In this document: one piece after another, positions 31,619 through 44,312 of the stretch
How the letters are laid out: every line of letters starts with the position of its first letter
Position numbering within the stretch: position 1 is the stretch's first letter
NCBI GenBank assembly: GCA_025786725.1
Contig: JAHLTZ010000029.1
Coordinates: 186,001-250,000, forward strand
Length of the DNA stretch: 64,000 nucleotides
Source of the DNA: Syncephalis fuscata S228
Taxonomy: Eukaryota > Fungi > Zoopagomycota
Direction: 5' to 3'
The notes under the pieces: generated by a model
The model's input: only the letters and a program-made list of their open reading frames with translations
Told to the model about the DNA's origin: nothing
The model's database searches: none
Made by a program: the position numbers and the translations under genes

Positions 31619-33465
31619 TTATTGGGTCAATAATTGCTTATCAGATACTGCAGCAAATGCTATATCAAGCCACTCGATTATCTGAGCAGGCTCTTCAAGA
31701 CCTATGCTTATACGAATTAAATCCATTGGAAGATTATATTTTTGTGCCCGCTCTGGTTCTTTGTAGTGATTCAAGGTTGTATATGCACAAACCATAGTGA
31801 AATTTGTACCAAATGTTGTGCCTTTAGCGCAGAGTAGTGCATCGTAGAATGCACGGGATGCTTCGGAGTGTGTAGATTTAGCGAAAGTAAACAGCCATAG
31901 CCTCCATTTGGTTTTTTGTATGAATCATATATTTCCCGGTCTACATACTTTGGATAATAAAACTTTGCAACTATTGCACTATTAGTATCGTATTAATTAT
32001 TGCCAACTCGGTTTACCTTTAGGATGATTATAAAGATAATCGCAAACAATCTCTGCCGTATGGTTGATGCGTGCATCTCTCTCCATAAATGTACGGCTGT
32101 TTCGCTCAAGTACCAATACATCTTGCCACCACATTGTATCTTCATAACCTGGACGACCAGTGCCATCGTCCACATTTAATGCATGCTGTAAACGAGCACC
32201 GTGTGGCCGAGTAGTATTTACAATTAAACTATACTACAGGTCATTAAACGTAATTAGATTGGTGTAATCACTTACCTGCCAGCCAGAAGATCGCATTCAC
32301 CACTAAAAAGTTTCGATAAACTGACGATCATTACATCTACAAATGGCAACAGCTGGCTATTCGAAAAACCACCTACAGTGGCGTCTATTAACAATGGTAT
32401 GTTAAATTTATCGGCCAATGCGCTTAATCTTCTGACATTTGGACTCATTAACAATGGATTAGTAGGAAGTTCACAAAAAATAGAAATAATTGGATCTTGT
32501 GTTGGATCATTCAGTATTTTTTCCAATTCATCAATTTCTTCTTCGGAACCATAGCCAAAAAATAGACAGTCAGTTCCAACCAATTCTAGTATCTTATGCG
32601 AATCTGTAAAAACAAAGCTATTTGTTGTTAATAAAGAGCTGTCTTTTATAATTTACCTACCCAAAACAAACAGTCCTGCACTTTGGTTTCATAAATCCAC
32701 TAAACGATTTAAATGAAAAATTGCATTCATACCACATGGATACAAGTATACATTGTTTTCATTTAATGCCAATGCACTAGGATGTTGTCGTGTAAATTCG
32801 GTATTTCCATCATCAGCATCGCTGTAGGTTGCATGTAGAACATTGACAAGGCGCTGCTGAATAAGCTGTTTGGCCTTGTCTACCTGATCAGCAGGTAAAT
32901 GATCAGTGGGTGGGGTCTGAAGCGATATGGCCTCTAGATCTACGTTGTGCTCAAGGGATACATCTGGCTTGTAAATGCCTACTTCGTTTAAGCAGAAATC
33001 AGCAAATCGTGTACTAATGCCAACGCCAGTATATGTCCAGTATTTTCTAACAAACTCAGCATCTTCCATAGGGTAAACTATGATATGCACATCGTACTTT
33101 CCAAATTTGAGCGTATCAACAATTACATCATCTCGAATTGAATTATTGCTTTTGATTGCCCTCTGTTTATATATAGCATTACGACATAATTCGCATGCTT
33201 CGCGCGTCAGTAACAGCATAAAATTATTATTGCTAGTATCAATCTCTAACTGTTTCAGACACTCTTTCGCTAGCTGTTTTACTCGATAATGGACTACATA
33301 GCGTGGATAACCAATGTTTAATATCGAGAAAAGATATGAGTTGTCTTCATAAAAATCTATGTAGTTTTTCCATGCAGGAAAAGATACAGATATAGCATGC
33401 AAATTATTGATTGGAGTAGTTTTTGCAAAGGATAGTTTGCCGAGAGGCAATACTTTTGTCGACAT
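31619..33465 (-). CDS. Cystathionine gamma-synthase-like PLP enzyme (STR2/Met-7 family), copy A
   Basis: HAISVSFPAW, GYPRYVVH, TGVGISTRFAD, VYLYPCGMNAIF, FCELPTNPLL, PLP lysine SLSKLFSGECDLLAG, GYGCLLS, KGTTFGTNFT, LIRISIGLE. Confidence 0.88.
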
Positions 33466-34402: not shown

Positions 34403-36247
34403 TTATTGGGTCAATAATTGCTTATCAGATACTGCAGCAAATGCTACATCAAGCCACTCGATTATCTGAGCAGGCTCTTCAAGACCTATGCTTATACGCA
34501 GCAAATCCACTGGAAGATTATATTTTTGTGCCCGCTCTGGTTCTTTGTAGTGATTCAAAATTGTATGTGCACAAACCATAGTGAAATTTGTACCAAATGT
34601 TGTGCCTTTAGCGCAGAGTAGTGCGTCGTAGAATGCACGGGATGCTTCGGGAGTGTGTAGATTTAGCGAAAGTAAACAGCCATAGCCTCCATTTGGTTTT
34701 TTGTATGAATCATACATTTCCCGGTCTACATACTTTGGATAATAAAACTTTGCAACTATTGCACTATTAGTATCGTATTAATTATTGCCAACTCGGTTTA
34801 CCTTTAGGATGATTATAAAGATAATCGCAAACAATCTCTGCCGTATGGTTGATGCGTGCATCTCTCTCCATAAATGTACGGCTGTTTCGCTCAAGTACCA
34901 ATACATCTTGCCACCACATTGTATCTTCATAACCTGGACGACCAGTGCCATCGTCCACATTTAATGCATGCTGTAAACGAGCACCGTGTGGCCGAGTAGT
35001 ATTTACAATTAAACTATACTACAGGTCATTAAACGTAATTAGATTGGTGTAATCACTTACCTGCCAGCCAGAAGATCGCATTCACCACTAAAAAGTTTCG
35101 ATAAACTGACGATCATTACATCTATAAATGGCAACAGCTGGCTATTCGAAAAACCACCTACAGTGGCGTCTATTAACAATGGTATGTTAAATTTATCGGC
35201 CAATGCGCTTAATCTTCTGACATTTGGACTCATTAACAATGGATTAGTAGGAAGTTCACAAAAAATAGAAATAATTGGATCTTGTGTTGGATCATTCAGT
35301 ATTTTTTCCAATTCATCAATTTCTTCTTCGGAACCATAGCCAAAAAATAGACAGTCAGTTCCAACCAATTCTAGTATCTTATGCGAAGCTGTAAAAACAA
35401 AGCTATTTGTTGTTAATAAAGAGCTGTCTTTTATAATTTACCTACCCAAAACAAACAGTCCTGCACTTTGGTTTCATAAATCCCACTAAACGATTTAAAT
35501 GAAAAATTGCATTCATACCACATGGATACAAGTATACATTGTTTTCATTTAATGCCAATGCACTAGGATGTTGTCGTGTAAATTCGGTATTTCCATCATC
35601 AGCATCGCTGTAGGTTGCATGTAGAACATTGACAAGGCGCTGCTGAATAAGCTGTTTGGCCTTGTCTACCTGATCAGCAGGTAAATGATCAGTGGGTGGG
35701 GTCTGAAGCGATATGGCCTCTAGATCTACGTTGTGCTCAAGGGATACATCTGGCTTGTAAATGCCTACTTCGTTTAAGCAGAAATCAGCAAATCGTGTAC
35801 TGATGCCAACACCAGTATATATCCAGTAGTTTTTAACAAAGTCGGCATCTTCCTTAGAATGAACTAAAATATGCACATCGTACTTTCCAAATTTGAACGT
35901 ATCAACAATTACATCATCTCGAATTGAATTATTGCTTTTGATTGCCCTCTGTTTATATATAGCATTACGCATAATTCGCATGCTTGCGCGTTAACAATAG
36001 CAAAAATTATTATTGCTAGTATCAATCTCTAACTGCTTCAAACACTCTTTCGCTAGCTGTTTTACTCGATAATGGACTATATAACGTGGATAACCAATGT
36101 TTGATATCAACCAAACATTTGGATTGCCTTCACCAATATCTATATAATCCTTCCATGTGGGAACAGATGCAGATATAGCGTGCAAATTATTGATTGGAGT
36201 AGTTTTTGCAAAGGATATTTGCCGAGAGGCAATACTTTTGTCGACAT
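34403..36247 (-). CDS. Cystathionine gamma-synthase-like PLP enzyme, copy B (tandem duplicate)
   Basis: Same motifs and intron positions as copy A, with near-identical nucleotide sequence over most of its length. Confidence 0.88.
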
Positions 36248-38449: not shown

Positions 38450-38853
38450 ACCAAATTGATGCTTCGATAAGTCTTTTAGCATTTACTCTTGGATAGAGTT
38501 ATTAAATAAGCATATAAAAATGAATAAAATGTTTATATTGAGCGCTGCAGTAATAACATTAAATGCTGACTTATTGAAGCCATGACATTCACTGTGCTCA
38601 ATAACTTTAGGATTTAAATAAAATATTGTTGTAATTAAGCCAATATGTACTTTTTATATTGCATATGTATACAAGCCTTATGTTACATGTTTATGTCATT
38701 CATTTTTTGTCAACCATTAAACGCAAATAAGACATGAGTATAAATACAATAGTCTGATTACGTAAAATTAAAATGGGGTCATGTTTATTGCTATAATTTT
38801 GCATAGCTGAATAGACACGGTTGACAGCAGACTTTTTGATACTAATAGTATCA

Positions 38854-41000
38854 TCAATTAAAAGTCGAATAAATTGAGGCATGACTAGAACTTGACATAT
38901 GGATAGAATCAATGGCAGCCGTTGAATGGTCTTGTTCTTTGCGGAATATGCCTGAAACGTACCAAACTAGTAGTCCAATTACAATGCCAATGCTAATTTT
39001 TTGGAAACACCGATATTCTATATTGTAAATAGATAAGGTGCATATCATGTAATTAGCGCATACTCCATTAGTACAAAATGCTACCTACATACCATTAGTA
39101 TTAATTTGTTGATACACATAGTGAATAGTATGTGGTTAGCGTATAAATGATCAATATAAAATTACACCTACCTTATATTAATATTAAGTTATCGATATGC
39201 ACATAGTACATAGCACATAATTAATATATAGATAATTGGCATTCAATACACTTACTTGCTATCGATATTAAGTTGCCGATACACATACAGTAAATAACAT
39301 GTAATTAGTATGTAGTCGATTGATATGCAATGCCACTTACCACCTATTGATATTAAGTTATTCGTACACATAATAAATACCATGTAATTAGTTGATGGCT
39401 AATTGGCATGCAATGCTACTTACGAACTATTAATATCCAGTCGTTAATAAACATATTAAATAATATGCAATTAGCACATAATCAATTAATATATAATGCG
39501 GCTTACTATATGGTACTATTAAGTTGTTGGTACACGCAATGTCCATTATGCAATTAGTGTATAGTTAATTAATATAAAACTACACCTACCTTCTATTAAT
39601 ATTAATTTGTTAATAAACACATTACATAGCATGTAGTTAGTATATAGTCAATTAATGTACAGTACTACTTACCTTCTATTGATATTAAGTTTTTAATTAG
39701 CACAGTACACAGTATGTAATTAGCTTATAGCTAATTGGCATACACTACTGCTTACCACCTATTAATATAAAGTTTTTAATCCAGAAAGATGCATAGCATT
39801 TAATTAGTACATTGCTAACCAGTATGCAATACCACTTACCGGCTATTATATTAAGTTGTTGAAATGCGTATTACATAACATGTAATTAGAGTATAATCAA
39901 ATAATATAAATTGGCACTTACTTCCTATTGATATCAATTTATTTATACACGAAATGCATAGCATGTAATTAGTGTATAGCAGATTAATATGAAATTTTAC
40001 TTGCTGGCTGTTAATATTAAATTGTTGCATAAAAAATTGTATATAACATGCTTAGCACATAACTATCCACTATATAATGCCACTTACTATCTATTTTAAT
40101 AGTTTTTTGATACACACAGTGCGTAGCATGTAATTAGTGTATAACTAGTTAGCCTAAAATAACACCTACCGTCTATTAATATTGCATTTTTAATTTACAG
40201 TACATAGAATGTAGTTAGTATATAGCTGATTTTTATATAATGCTACTTACACTCTAATAATATTTAAAAAAATTATATAAATAGTACGTAGAATATAATT
40301 AGCTTACAGTCAATTGACATAAAATATCACTTACCGGCTATTAATATTAAGTTATTAGACATACAAAACACGCGGCGTGTAATCAGTATATATTTGCCTA
40401 ATATAAATTTTGCTTACGAACTATTAATATAAGTTATCAAATACACACAGTGTATATATTTTAATTAATATTTAGTTACTTAACATGTAATATTACTTAC
40501 GAGCTATTGATATAAGTTGTTAACAATACAACGCGTGTAACATAATTAGTACATAAACGGCTGATACAAACTATAACTTACGATCTATTGATGTTGGTTT
40601 ATTAATTAATTAATTAATTAATTAACTAGCCATTTACAATATCATTTACCTTTTGTTAATTTAAATCCAAAATATTAGTATCATCGATGTAGTATTTAAT
40701 TTGCTATTTCACGCTAAACCTACCTGTATCTGACAATGCTAATTTAGATTAAAATTGGCATTTATCGTTTTTATTAAATAGACAGTAGAATACAGTAAGT
40801 ATTGGAGCAGCATTTAGAATCACGACTTACGTTCTAATAATACAAGTAGTTAAGCATAGTGTGGTAAGCATAAAACAATTGTATATTTCTTCTAATCGCA
40901 ACATACCACGACGAATTAAGGCTGGCTTAGCATCCACTATAACCATATTGGCTATCAAAGCCACGAAAATGGTGCAGATGACGGCAATAGAAAGCTTCAT
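38854..41000 (-). CDS. Micro-exon gene encoding a predicted 110-aa type-I membrane protein (signal peptide, RR, micro-exon-encoded ectodomain, TM, tail)
   Basis: Exon 1 is 41000-40907 (MKLSIAVICTIFVALIANMVIVDAKPALIRR+G). Micro-exons by first base: AAC 40833, 15 nt 40738-40724, ATC 40584, CTC 40503, TTC 40420, CCG 40337, AGT 40253, ACG 40172, ATA 40090, CCA 40007, GAA 39924, CCG 39842, GTG 39758, AAG 39675, AAG 39592, 9 nt 39515-39507, TTC 39426, GTG 39343, CAA 39258. The last exon is 39017-38854. The total is 333 nt and stop-free: ..RR-EPLSDTDPLPEYDTRTGEEVPYIRAK-YRCFQKISIGIVIGLLVWYVSGIFRKEQ..STFN*. Confidence 0.8.
39018..40655 (-). repeat. Degenerate ~83-bp tandem repeat of ~20 units, each an ~80-nt intron plus a 3-nt exon
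   Basis: The plus-strand motif c(t/c)tac-NNN-ctattaatattaagtt..catgtaattag recurs every 81-85 bp. On the minus strand it reads GTA(A/G)G..CTAAT..AATAG|NNN|GTA(A/G)G. Confidence 0.93.
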
Positions 41001-42987
41001 GGTGCTATTAATCTGTTGAAACAAAAAAGTAGAATGGATGATAGGGTGCGATCAATAAAAACTAGGTAGATGTGCTTATTTGGTAGAAAGTGGAGCGTGT
41101 TGATGATACCGACAGCTATTTGCGTGGATTATTCAGTCTATTTAAGTCCATGGTTATGCTAAAATAACAAAAGAATGTATTGTAAAGGCTATAACGCTGA
41201 AATACAATGTAAATCAATAACAATATATCCACAGGGTGATTTGAAACGCGTATATTAATAGGTAAATGGTGTGAAAATATGCAGCTTGGTTCTTTGTTAT
41301 AACCTGTTTAGAATTTACACATGTGGTGCAACAATATCAATTATATAGCACATATGTTGTATAAATAGCATTAATCTGCATTGTACTATCACTCATTTCA
41401 ACAATGTTATGTTAAATGAACGTATTGATTCTATAGAACCAATAAAGGTAATATTGCTACATCTTTGTTCTTCTAAAAAAAACTTTCAATGGCAACACTT
41501 CCATGCGTTCAAACAAAGTATATTGACTATATTGTGACAATGCTAATACCTTGAAATTGTATTTTTGTGCAAGTATATACTGCTGTACATAAACCAGCCA
41601 TTGTTCCTTAGGCTATAAAATATACTGATTGTCCACAGGTTCTCTCAACTTTGTTGTAGCTATTTTTATAGAAATAATAAGCACTGTTTGTAGCGTAAGT
41701 CAATATGGTATTTGAATAATAAAATACTTTATTTCTACAGATGTCATGGAGCACTTAGTTTTAACTTGGCCTTAATTTATAAAATTACATGCAAATCAAT
41801 CCACAAACTGAAAAGCGTATTTATCGGGCAATTTCAGCCATATAATATTGATTTTGGGTGCACAGTGACAGTGGACTGCACATTAGCCAGTGGTCATTTA
41901 AAGTATAGTTAATTCTCAATGCCTTTGAGAAACAATCATAATAGCGTATTAAATAGCATTGTTCGCAAAAGAACAAGTCAAAACAGGAATTAATAGAAAG
42001 ACAGTTAAACATTGTATGAAAATACACAAACAACGACATTAGAACAGGTATATTGATATACAAAACCCTCTACTAATATAACTAATTCAGTAAACCCGTT
42101 AGTTTAGATAAGCATGGTATACCGTATATAAACAGCACAGTACATACAACAAATAAATAATATGATTGACTAAATGGGAAATAATAACTGCTACGCATGG
42201 CGGTTTGTCTGCATTGCTTAGCACTTGGAATATTTGTTAAAAGAATAACTAAATAGCGTATGATTTTGTGTGTGCGCAATAAATTATTCTTACAAAACCA
42301 ATGAATATAAATACAGATTATTCGATCTACAATCAATTGATGCTAAACTTTGCCAGATAACAGGAAAGGCCAATAGCAACTTTAACTTAATATTATATAT
42401 ATGCCACAATTAAGGTGCGTATAACCAATACCATACCATGTAACTATAGCGCTTTTTGATAATCCACAATGTGCACAATCTAAAAGTGTCATTTTTTATT
42501 ATAGCCTATTTCTCAATCGGCATTGCCTTCCGTATCGATACAGCAGTAAACCAGTTTTCCGCGTGTCGCCTTGATCATGCATCAATAGCTCAATGAGCCA
42601 TTGTTTTTTGCCAGCGCCTCTCTTTCCAACACCTAGCTAGCCTACATAATCTTTGATTCTCTATTTATCACTCATTACCTTATGTCTTGTTAATAGTCGA
42701 GATCAAAGTTTGTGTTTAAGCAACTAGTCGTATTTTCGTATATACCATCACTTTTAGTCTAATTATTGTAATTAAAAGTCGGACCTTTAGATAAATATCA
42801 CCGCCTGACAACACTTGTGGCACAATAGCAAAGCTGAATTTAAGCACTTTATATTTACTAAACTAATAGCCAGCTAGCTTTGCCACATTCGCCTCTATCA
42901 ATAGAACAGTCGCAGTCAAGCTATTACATACATACATACATATACTACTGTCAACATCGTTTATTCAATATTCTCTAAATTAGTGCC

Positions 42988-44312
42988 ATGTCTTTTCTTG
43001 AGCCGTATCAGGCATTAACAATTCTAATAACTCTACTTGCTTATATCACCTTAACTACTATAGTGGCTATTGTTATCCACATTTATTGGCAGCAAAAGCC
43101 ACCAGTATTGCGTCTACGCTCAATTGCATTTGCCTCTATCCCGGCAGTAACTGGTGCTTTACTTGTAGCCGCACAGCTGGTGCGCGAGTATATGCCACGA
43201 CAATTTCCATGCACTGCTATTTACTGGTCTTACTCGGTAATTGCACCGGCCTGGCTACTTGGATTGGTTATCAGTGTGCTACGCATGTGCTGGTTAATGC
43301 GTGATGAGGCAGTAAAGCGTGAAGCAGACGAAGCCATTAATGGCATGCGAATGAATACTGGTAAACAATTTCTAGATTGGATGCACAAATGGGATGCGCC
43401 AGATATCGAAGAGGATATCATCGAGATAGATCCAGAAACTTGTACCATTGCCGAAGAAACTGTGCCAGAGCCACCAGAGCCACCGGCACCATCTCCGTCA
43501 GCGGGTGTAAGAAGCCATCAACGCCAAGTCACATCACTATCGATTACCATTCCTACGCAGCGTGAATTACAGCGAACTAGAACGCAAACGTCAAGACCGT
43601 CACCTTACTGACGGGAAATACCATCGTGTCGCAAGGACCATCTCGTTCCATTCTATCGCGTATGGTGGATTCGCGACAATTATGGCTAGACTCAGATGCG
43701 CCACAGTCGGCCAGTCGCGTTACGTCCGATCATCTTGTTCAAGCAGATTGGTCGTTCCAGCGAAGCCACTGGTTTACCAAGCACTATCTGTTTCGTCTTT
43801 GGCTTTATGCAGCCTTGGCTCATTTCTGTCCAGCGTTTGGTATTCAGATCATTACAAGACGCTACTCAGTCTTTCCGGTTGTATATGGTAATTGTAGCGG
43901 CGGTACCGAATTGGCACCCTTTTTCGTTTTTGGCATGTTCTACTTTTTAATAGCCATCATTGTTACATGGCGACTGGCCTACGGAAACGCAAGCTCTGGG
44001 TCCGACATGACCAATGCAGCAATACGTGCCCATATGCCAAAATTCATTCACTGGGAAGTGACGACACTCTCGCTTGCTCTGGCATTCTGTTTAGGCGGCT
44101 TTGCCATTGGATTTCTATGGGATGGACCACCCTTCTCGCCCGATCTATTTCTTACGGTAGCAGTGGTGGCAGTACATACCATTCATTTGGTGATTCCCAC
44201 TATATTTGCAATTACTACAGGGAAGCACTCTATTGCATCGACATCATCTAAAGAGTGTGGTTCGCCATCTGCAAATAACGCACGTGCCTCTATGGCAACG
44301 ATTACATTTTAA
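42988..44312 (+). CDS. Multi-pass (about 7 TM) GPCR-like membrane protein, intronless, one frameshift near 43600
   Basis: ORF 42988-43611 has three hydrophobic helices with LRLRS and FPC motifs. ORF 43626-44312 has four helices with a loop Cys (GNCSGGTELAPF). A long intracellular loop lies between TM3 and TM4. Confidence 0.65.

Follow-up and report, generated by a model that had tools for sequence, protein, structure and literature searches.

On the minus strand of the window, the whole 64-kb stretch of Syncephalis fuscata DNA that was analysed, lies a predicted gene in which a leader exon is followed by exons that are mostly one codon long and by a last exon (Table 1). The 21 minus-strand exons proposed by the first-pass annotation were all found in place. 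Exon 1 encodes a signal peptide plus a short pro-segment with Arg-Arg at its end, and the micro-exons encode an acidic, Pro-rich peptide devoid of Cys. Between 40833 and 39256 the minus strand contains 16 YAG-N3-GTRRG sites, spaced mostly 81-84 nt apart, and a seventeenth 3-nt unit (40007-40005) has a GC donor; elsewhere in the 64 kb the pattern occurs 3 times on the minus strand and at 10 scattered places on the plus strand. A branch-like motif lies 43-47 nt upstream of the acceptor in nearly all introns of the thirteen-exon block. Ancestrally the 15-nt exon probably measured 6 nt, judging from paralog L017, which has the 6-nt form only; scanning to the first AG would favour the longer form.

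The neighbourhood of the micro-exon gene includes a SURF4 gene, 100% identical to an S. fuscata protein. The segment 31537-36617 is duplicated in tandem at a period of about 2.78 kb and is in parts 100% identical; each duplicate holds a minus-strand ORF (32689-33465, without Pfam match, and 35442-35981). Two GC-rich plus-strand ORFs with several hydrophobic segments, divergently oriented from the micro-exon gene, are found at 42988-44312, and Pfam gave no match for either.

Table 1. Features of the micro-exon gene of the window, in the direction of its reading
Feature	Position	Strand	Remarks
TATA-like element (putative)	41138..41146	-	position matches TATAAATA element of paralog L040
Probable 5' UTR, from ATCATCA motif	41001..41107	-	intronless paralog L039 starts at the homologous motif, ~108 nt before ATG
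Exon 1, 94 nt, ends in phase 1	40907..41000	-	conserved in paralogs
First 3-nt micro-exon	40831..40833	-	TAG/GTAAG flanks; array of paralog L017 begins with the same triplet
15-nt exon, or 6-nt exon from internal CAG	40724..40738; 40729-40724	-	both in frame
Eroded unit 1, acceptor now CAA	40650..40652	-	L017 has an intact CAG acceptor and a 3-nt exon here
Thirteen consecutive 3-nt exons	39590..40584	-	introns 78-81 nt; starts 40584, 40503, 40420, 40337, 40253, 40172, 40090, 40007 (GC donor), 39924, 39842, 39758, 39675, 39592
9-nt exon	39507..39515	-	flanked by TAG and GTAAG; keeps the repeat's register
Three more 3-nt exons	39256..39426	-	starts 39426, 39343, 39258; splice flanks
Eroded unit 2, acceptor now TAT	39172..39174	-	common to copy L016 on contig C196
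Eroded unit 3 (39091-39089), acceptor now TGG	39085..39091	-	cryptic TAG acceptor ends at 39085
Last exon to the stop of the first-pass annotation, 54 open codons	38854..39017	-	homologous to the paralogs' 3' UTR
18-codon hydrophobic stretch, possible membrane anchor	38944..38997	-	window copy and L016 only
AATAAA polyadenylation signal	38784..38789	-	L039 ends ~18 nt past the homologous signal, then A-run

The joined model of 333 nt contains no internal stop, which reproduces the earlier concatenation, and it stays open after the skipping of any single exon. Nevertheless, 73% of exon-order shuffles of this gene are likewise open; the open frame is therefore weak evidence when taken alone, and the stop-free status of the single gene was dropped as an argument for coding. 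Tandem Repeats Finder, for its part, describes the array as an 83-84-bp repeat.

S. fuscata is a member of the Zoopagomycota that parasitizes Mucorales. A scan of its genome for arrays of 3-nt exons, as suggested by the first-pass annotation, gave 2,302 matches to a generic pattern for two adjacent 3-nt exons and none to a reversed-pattern control. The leader peptide of exon 1 is matched at no fewer than 150 places, some on duplicate contigs, and the segment from the exon-1 donor to the first micro-exon has an exact match at 55 loci; of 373 candidates for the window region 40 were scored, and these gave about 40 distinct matching loci. The array and the conserved last exon were present in 20 of 20 paralogs examined, and the conserved exon 1 in 19 of them, the exception being truncated by a contig end. 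Twenty-one micro-exon loci and five intronless ones were read, and the family counts are lower bounds in which duplicate contigs are included; the family probably exceeds 100 loci. Exon 1 has a mean column identity of 85% among paralogs, and its hydrophobic leader of 24 residues, as judged from the sequence, is conserved in 16 aligned loci. The window copy is divergent, differing from L019 at 17% of exon 1 and 33% of the last exon.

Homology searches used exon 1, the last exon and the intronless proteins as queries. Every named protein with the leader comes from S. fuscata, and the additional matches of the deep search bear the same leader, save two marginal ones. No relatives were found in Pfam, in the ESM Atlas, in viral contigs or, by a profile of the mature peptide, in other species. 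Five proteins (P0132, P0135, P0136, P0137 and P0139; 111-308 aa) fuse the leader to longer, unrelated-looking mature regions, and hence the leader exon is used beyond the Cys peptides. P0134 matches the genome over its first 33 residues only.

The contribution of the arrays to coding was analyzed by a frame-blind parse of 21 loci, in which donors were picked and the nearest upstream YAG was taken as the acceptor; the units are homologous repeats, so that motif counts are not independent and the invariance of the splice sites is partly built into the parse. Among 582 parsed exons, 576 are multiples of 3 (551 of 3 nt, 23 of 6 and 2 of 9), and three of the six that are not resolve to 6 nt through an alternative acceptor. 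In the same parse no acceptor was called for 11 units, the majority of which belong to the window copy and L016. There are 14-49 micro-exons per gene. Stops were then counted at the 17 loci with exons of 3n length only, leaving out L018, L019 and L035, which have a frameshifting exon and are likely pseudogenes, and L016 as a near-duplicate. In the phase-1 frame none of the 480 junction-spanning codons is a stop, against a mean of 27.5 after shuffling of exon order, and none of 5,000 shuffles reached zero; the other two frames contain 4 and 45 stops. Cys is enriched in the phase-1 frame of these loci (87 against 39 after shuffling). Most products display CX2CX3C or CX3C, a variable loop, and then CX3CX3C or CX3C; the arrangement CX3C-Xn-CX3C occurs in many paralogs, such as L020 and L023, but not in the window copy. 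The family very probably splices its 3-nt exons, and the earlier reading of the 83-bp repeat as spliceosomal introns around codon-length phase-1 exons that follow a signal-peptide exon, a layout like that of micro-exon genes (MEGs), would hold.

The window copy itself departs from the family in several respects. Three of its repeat units, on which the first-pass annotation was silent, kept the donor and lost the AG acceptor. In eroded unit 1 the first AG abuts the donor, which leaves a zero-length exon. Paralogs L018, L021, L022 and L030 terminate on a split TAA stop, and in the window copy eroded unit 3 would formerly have given its T. In addition, a 1-nt deletion in the window copy removed the backup stop. 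The last exon, 68-73% identical to about 38 other loci, stops within 0-5 codons in all 19 paralogs other than L016, and the segment that the first-pass annotation took as a transmembrane part of the gene's design aligns to the 3' UTR of these 19. A membrane tail as a family trait is thus rejected, and the tail of the window copy is a recently opened UTR, since two terminal acceptors were lost, that of the split-stop unit among them, and the backup stop was deleted. The 18-codon stretch within it has a mean hydropathy of 1.9, compared with 0.2-0.9 in paralogs and 0.49 +/- 0.54 in a neutral simulation from the family UTR (P=0.003 for a segment chosen post hoc). Whether the tail is made depends on the 3' acceptor used, 39017 giving the tail and the cryptic 39085 an early stop; the latter is the first AG past the branch motif of the last eroded unit, and its use leads to a stop after 5 codons. 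That the window copy carries a read-through membrane tail is accordingly put forward as a tentative reading, with the odds slightly against it.

A second copy, L016 on contig C196, is 98% identical to the window copy over 6 kb and is either an allele or a recent duplicate. The two differ at 1 of 408 exonic positions compared with 2.2% in introns (P=0.006), a contrast to be read with the caution that UTRs are often conserved across the family. At splice positions 5 of 80 differ, all of them lost in L016 (P=0.04, or 0.07 if only G sites are counted). L016, with five further functional splice sites lost relative to the window copy, stays open if the exons of the lost sites are skipped; this suggests deletion of codons by splice-site mutation, although relaxed selection explains it too.

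The window copy could be a decaying pseudogene within a real family, its 54-codon tail an accident of the lost splice sites. Three of its 22 acceptors are lost and almost none in the main family, its micro-exons are devoid of Cys, the splice positions that differ in L016 are not below the intron rate, and leader searches found no annotated protein with its exon 1. This reading is nonetheless rather unlikely in view of the near-identity of the exons with L016, the retention of frame by all remaining exons, the hydrophobicity of the tail above neutral expectation (with the post hoc reservation already given) and the presence of Cys-less members among the annotated proteins. The window copy probably belongs instead to a divergent subfamily, poor in Cys and in the process of losing splice sites; it would still make an acidic, Pro-rich peptide, and its expression seems likely.

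The introns of the parsed loci measure 72-86 nt, typically about 80 nt, and their signals are uniformly strong, with GTAAGT at the donor (94% at +6) and TAG at the acceptor. The last 25 nt of 540 introns contain no AG, against a comparison figure of 332, and the last 45 nt contain 15, against 715. Counted from the acceptor, a CTAAY motif is most frequent 43-45 nt upstream. This arrangement is consistent with a branch point near mid-intron followed by scanning to the first AG. Array introns of L018 and L027 share the same insert of about 420 bp just past a donor; it is accompanied by a short target duplication and one end resembles a tRNA, although ARAGORN detected no tRNA in it; L027 has a second insert, of 810 bp, at an equivalent site.

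Almost all exons being multiples of 3 in one phase, the arrays might diversify chiefly at the RNA level if symmetric exons are skipped in varying combinations, a mode reported for schistosome MEGs and Tuber nank and thus with precedent in the literature, and the tolerance of the window gene to every single-exon skip is in line with this. However, the strength of the splice signals is uniform, skipping would disrupt the Cys spacing and, judging from the shuffles, often introduce stops, and the intronless copies described below hold complete Cys patterns. Skipping as the chief source of diversity is therefore improbable, though it is compatible with diversification at the DNA level, and both can hold.

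Comparison of paralogs indicates how the arrays change. In three close paralog pairs the micro-exons are 18.5% divergent and the intron bodies 4.9%, while the splice dinucleotides differ at 0 of 259 positions; micro-exons thus diverge about 4 times faster than introns between close paralogs. Across 70 positionally orthologous codons, in overlapping codon pairs, there are 15 nonsynonymous changes, two of them shared between pairs and counted twice, and 0 synonymous-only ones. A conserved leader joined to a hypervariable mature peptide is, at this level of comparison, the pattern of diversifying selection, and the constancy of the splice sites is indicative of purifying selection on them. L029 has a block of 8 units missing in L031, from which it shows otherwise no exon difference. 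The nearest match of an inner intron lies in the same gene in 137 of 540 cases, and similarity decays with distance. The same-gene best matches, the distance decay and the 8-unit block argue for tandem duplication of units; between paralogs, arrays evidently grow and shrink by whole units of intron plus exon.

Members without introns provide a further view of the family. Annotated Cys-rich proteins were considered as transcript-derived proof of splicing, and this failed: P0123, P0129 and P0126 each correspond to one uninterrupted reading frame in the genome and are single-exon genes. P0126 and P0130, both annotated, look like translations of one intronless sequence that part into different frames past residue 27. 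Of the 150 leader matches that were scored, about 40 continue with no stop codon. The intronless copies consist of exon 1, a Cys-rich segment and the family last exon, joined at the predicted junctions, and have leader, Cys spacing and 3' UTR in common with the arrays. In L039 the homology to intron-bearing genes extends from about 108 nt before the ATG to about 18 nt past AATAAA, where a short A-run follows, and the 3' UTR is 87-89% identical to intron-bearing loci; L041 also loses upstream homology, at about -110. L039 has the anatomy of a retrocopy, which is indirect evidence that a fully spliced mRNA existed. L036-L038 are intronless and yet retain 600 nt of upstream flank plus downstream flank, as would follow if cDNA had mediated loss of introns in place or if the intronless state were ancestral. 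None of the 21 loci proved to be the exact micro-exon parent of an intronless copy; relative to shuffled exon order, the best alignments scored z 4.4 and 5.1.

The reverse history, in which intronless genes are ancestral and an intron-generating mobile element was inserted repeatedly into every codon, would explain the homology of all introns and the flanks retained by L036-L038. It is a poor fit to the rest and quite improbable: L039 spans an interval from the putative transcript start to past AATAAA like a retrocopy, with L041 losing homology near the same start and the 3' UTR of L039 so close to that of intron-bearing paralogs, the same-gene intron matches, their distance decay and the L029/L031 block point to tandem duplication, and random insertion would not yield a single phase throughout. 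Weakest of all is the reading of the array as a non-coding 83-bp minisatellite with splice-like words by chance, which has the repeat call and the non-significant open frame of the window gene in its favour and is rejected as a satellite-only account, its probability being very small, on the frame-specific absence of stops, the patterning of Cys, the exclusion of AG, the concentration of the fastest change in precisely the three nucleotides that separate AG from GT, flanking exons that stay constant and the existence of intronless copies.

The window very probably contains a real spliceosomal gene that belongs to a large S. fuscata family of small secreted peptides spelled by micro-exons. In its predicted layout, a conserved exon encodes the signal peptide together with a dibasic site for cleavage, 14-49 phase-1 exons of 3 nt with a few of 6 or 9 spell the mature peptide, and a conserved last exon supplies the stop and the 3' UTR. 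The phase implies that every codon is split across an intron of about 80 nt. In the mechanism proposed here, introns would be recognised singly, by intron definition, with branching some 45 nt ahead of the acceptor and use of the first AG. The layout would act as a generator of diversity mainly at the DNA level, through duplication and deletion of units and point mutation of splice sites, and exon skipping perhaps adds to it.

Family products measure 50-110 aa. The model of the mature part of P0123 is a helix-loop-helix of mediocre confidence (pLDDT 69), whose fold matches are weak (best Z 3.6; BWI-2c, 2lqx, Z 3.3; 6wqj, Z 3.0), the alpha-hairpinin matches being no better than those to unrelated helical pairs. 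The peptides may fold as helical hairpins held by disulfides and serve as effectors or antimicrobials, directed at the Mucorales host or at competitors. Leader, dibasic site, disulfide pattern and fast evolution, taken by analogy, moderately favour a role of the family as secreted effectors or antimicrobial peptides in mycoparasitism. Of the surface peptide claimed by the first-pass annotation, the secreted leader appears to stand, and the membrane anchor is not a family trait; the typical product would be a soluble Cys-rich peptide, of which the window copy is an atypical, Cys-less version.

A more ambitious version of this scheme is conceivable, with somewhat less than an even chance of being right as a whole. 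More than 100 effectors would be written one codon-length exon at a time by a generator working at codon resolution, in which residues are added by duplication of intron plus exon and removed by splice-site mutation or skipping, and versions that succeed would become fixed in the form of intronless retrogenes; the disappearance of two terminal micro-exons would have turned 3' UTR of the window copy into a new membrane anchor.

Such a family would bring exon size to its lower limit across a whole mature peptide, with up to 49 micro-exons in a row and about 80 nt of intron per residue, and thousands of such exons in one genome. It would offer a natural test system for how the spliceosome joins runs of 3-nt exons, including the order of splicing, the distant branch point and first-AG scanning. 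It also constitutes a candidate repertoire of mycoparasite effectors that annotation largely misses, given that the full-length annotated members checked are the intronless ones. The layout would let single amino acids be added, dropped or changed quickly, and gene finders miss it.

Arrays of similar layout were found in other DNA. A metagenome scan gave 13 contigs with varied 3-nt units at a period of 80-100 nt, most other matches being simple repeats; from their domain content these contigs are probably fungal. One array follows a hydrolase-NACHT-ankyrin gene, several precede protein kinases and one comes after a GTPase. In the first (L060:2507-8168, Ga0307512_10011798) about 32 three-nt units follow the gene at an 83-nt period, and the array looks like the Tuber nank type. 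L047, L096, L134 and L149 (WNGF/WNFZ contigs, GC 15-20%) have 11-17 three-nt exons at a period of 90-100 nt, with 0 stops in phase 1; the L096 array is directly before a protein kinase, a similar N-terminal stretch is seen in L047 and L134, and the kinases of this group presumably resemble those of Glomeromycotina. In L144:76-2361 (Ga0307512_10049463) a protein kinase domain is preceded by sixteen three-nt units with a period of 81 nt. L127, L074, L050, L070 and L105 carry 10-36 three-nt units at an 80-nt period; in L127 a small GTPase-like domain precedes the array, and the flanking coding stretches of L074 and L050 are alike. That such arrays sit beside NLR, kinase and GTPase sequences, in contigs of probable fungal origin, suggests a route to protein diversity that is recurrent and under-annotated.

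Literature searches found no paper on a Syncephalis micro-exon family or on secreted peptides wholly encoded by codon-sized exons. Single-codon exon arrays as such, which the first-pass annotation believed undescribed, do have a precedent in Tuber melanosporum nank, for which tens of alternatively spliced codon-sized exons are reported (Iotti 2012, PMID 22289772, as cited in PMC4986451, PMC10197012 and PMC13449251). Exons of 1-3 nt are also spliced in Coprinopsis cinerea, where long reads revealed 27 of 3 nt in 26 genes (bioRxiv 10.1101/2024.05.10.593147), about one per gene in contrast with the S. fuscata arrays. At the level of the product, the Cys spacing of many paralogs and the helix-loop-helix predicted for P0123 resemble those of alpha-hairpinins (BWI-2c, 2lqx; vicilin-buried peptide, 6wqj); however, many paralogs have an extra CX2C, the window copy lacks such Cys, and the plant peptides derive from repeat precursors.

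The closest parallels are MEGs and nank. Schistosome MEGs comprise 35 genes with 10-20 exons of 6-81 bp (3-81 bp according to the abstract), mostly 15 bp, and introns of 0.1-5 kb (bioRxiv 10.1101/2023.06.21.545858). Like them, the S. fuscata genes form a multigene family of a parasite in which a signal peptide is followed by short, mostly symmetric exons, with secreted, fast-evolving products that automatic annotation misses. They differ in that about 95% of the exons are of 3 nt, the introns of about 80 nt are homologous and intronless copies exist; MEGs, moreover, are specific to Schistosomatidae, the family here resides in a fungus, and the leader-search matches included no MEG-like protein. 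With nank, as reported, the family shares a fungal origin and the use of tens of codon-sized exons for diversification in interactions between organisms. The nank micro-exons reportedly belong to a large intracellular NLR-type receptor and are varied by alternative splicing, whereas in S. fuscata they make up the whole mature secreted peptide, with diversification at the DNA level and loss of introns evident, and the products of 50-110 aa are without NACHT or ankyrin, Pfam being empty for two intronless members and the window's last exon. The gene appears to work like a MEG, yet it is a member of neither the MEG nor the nank family.
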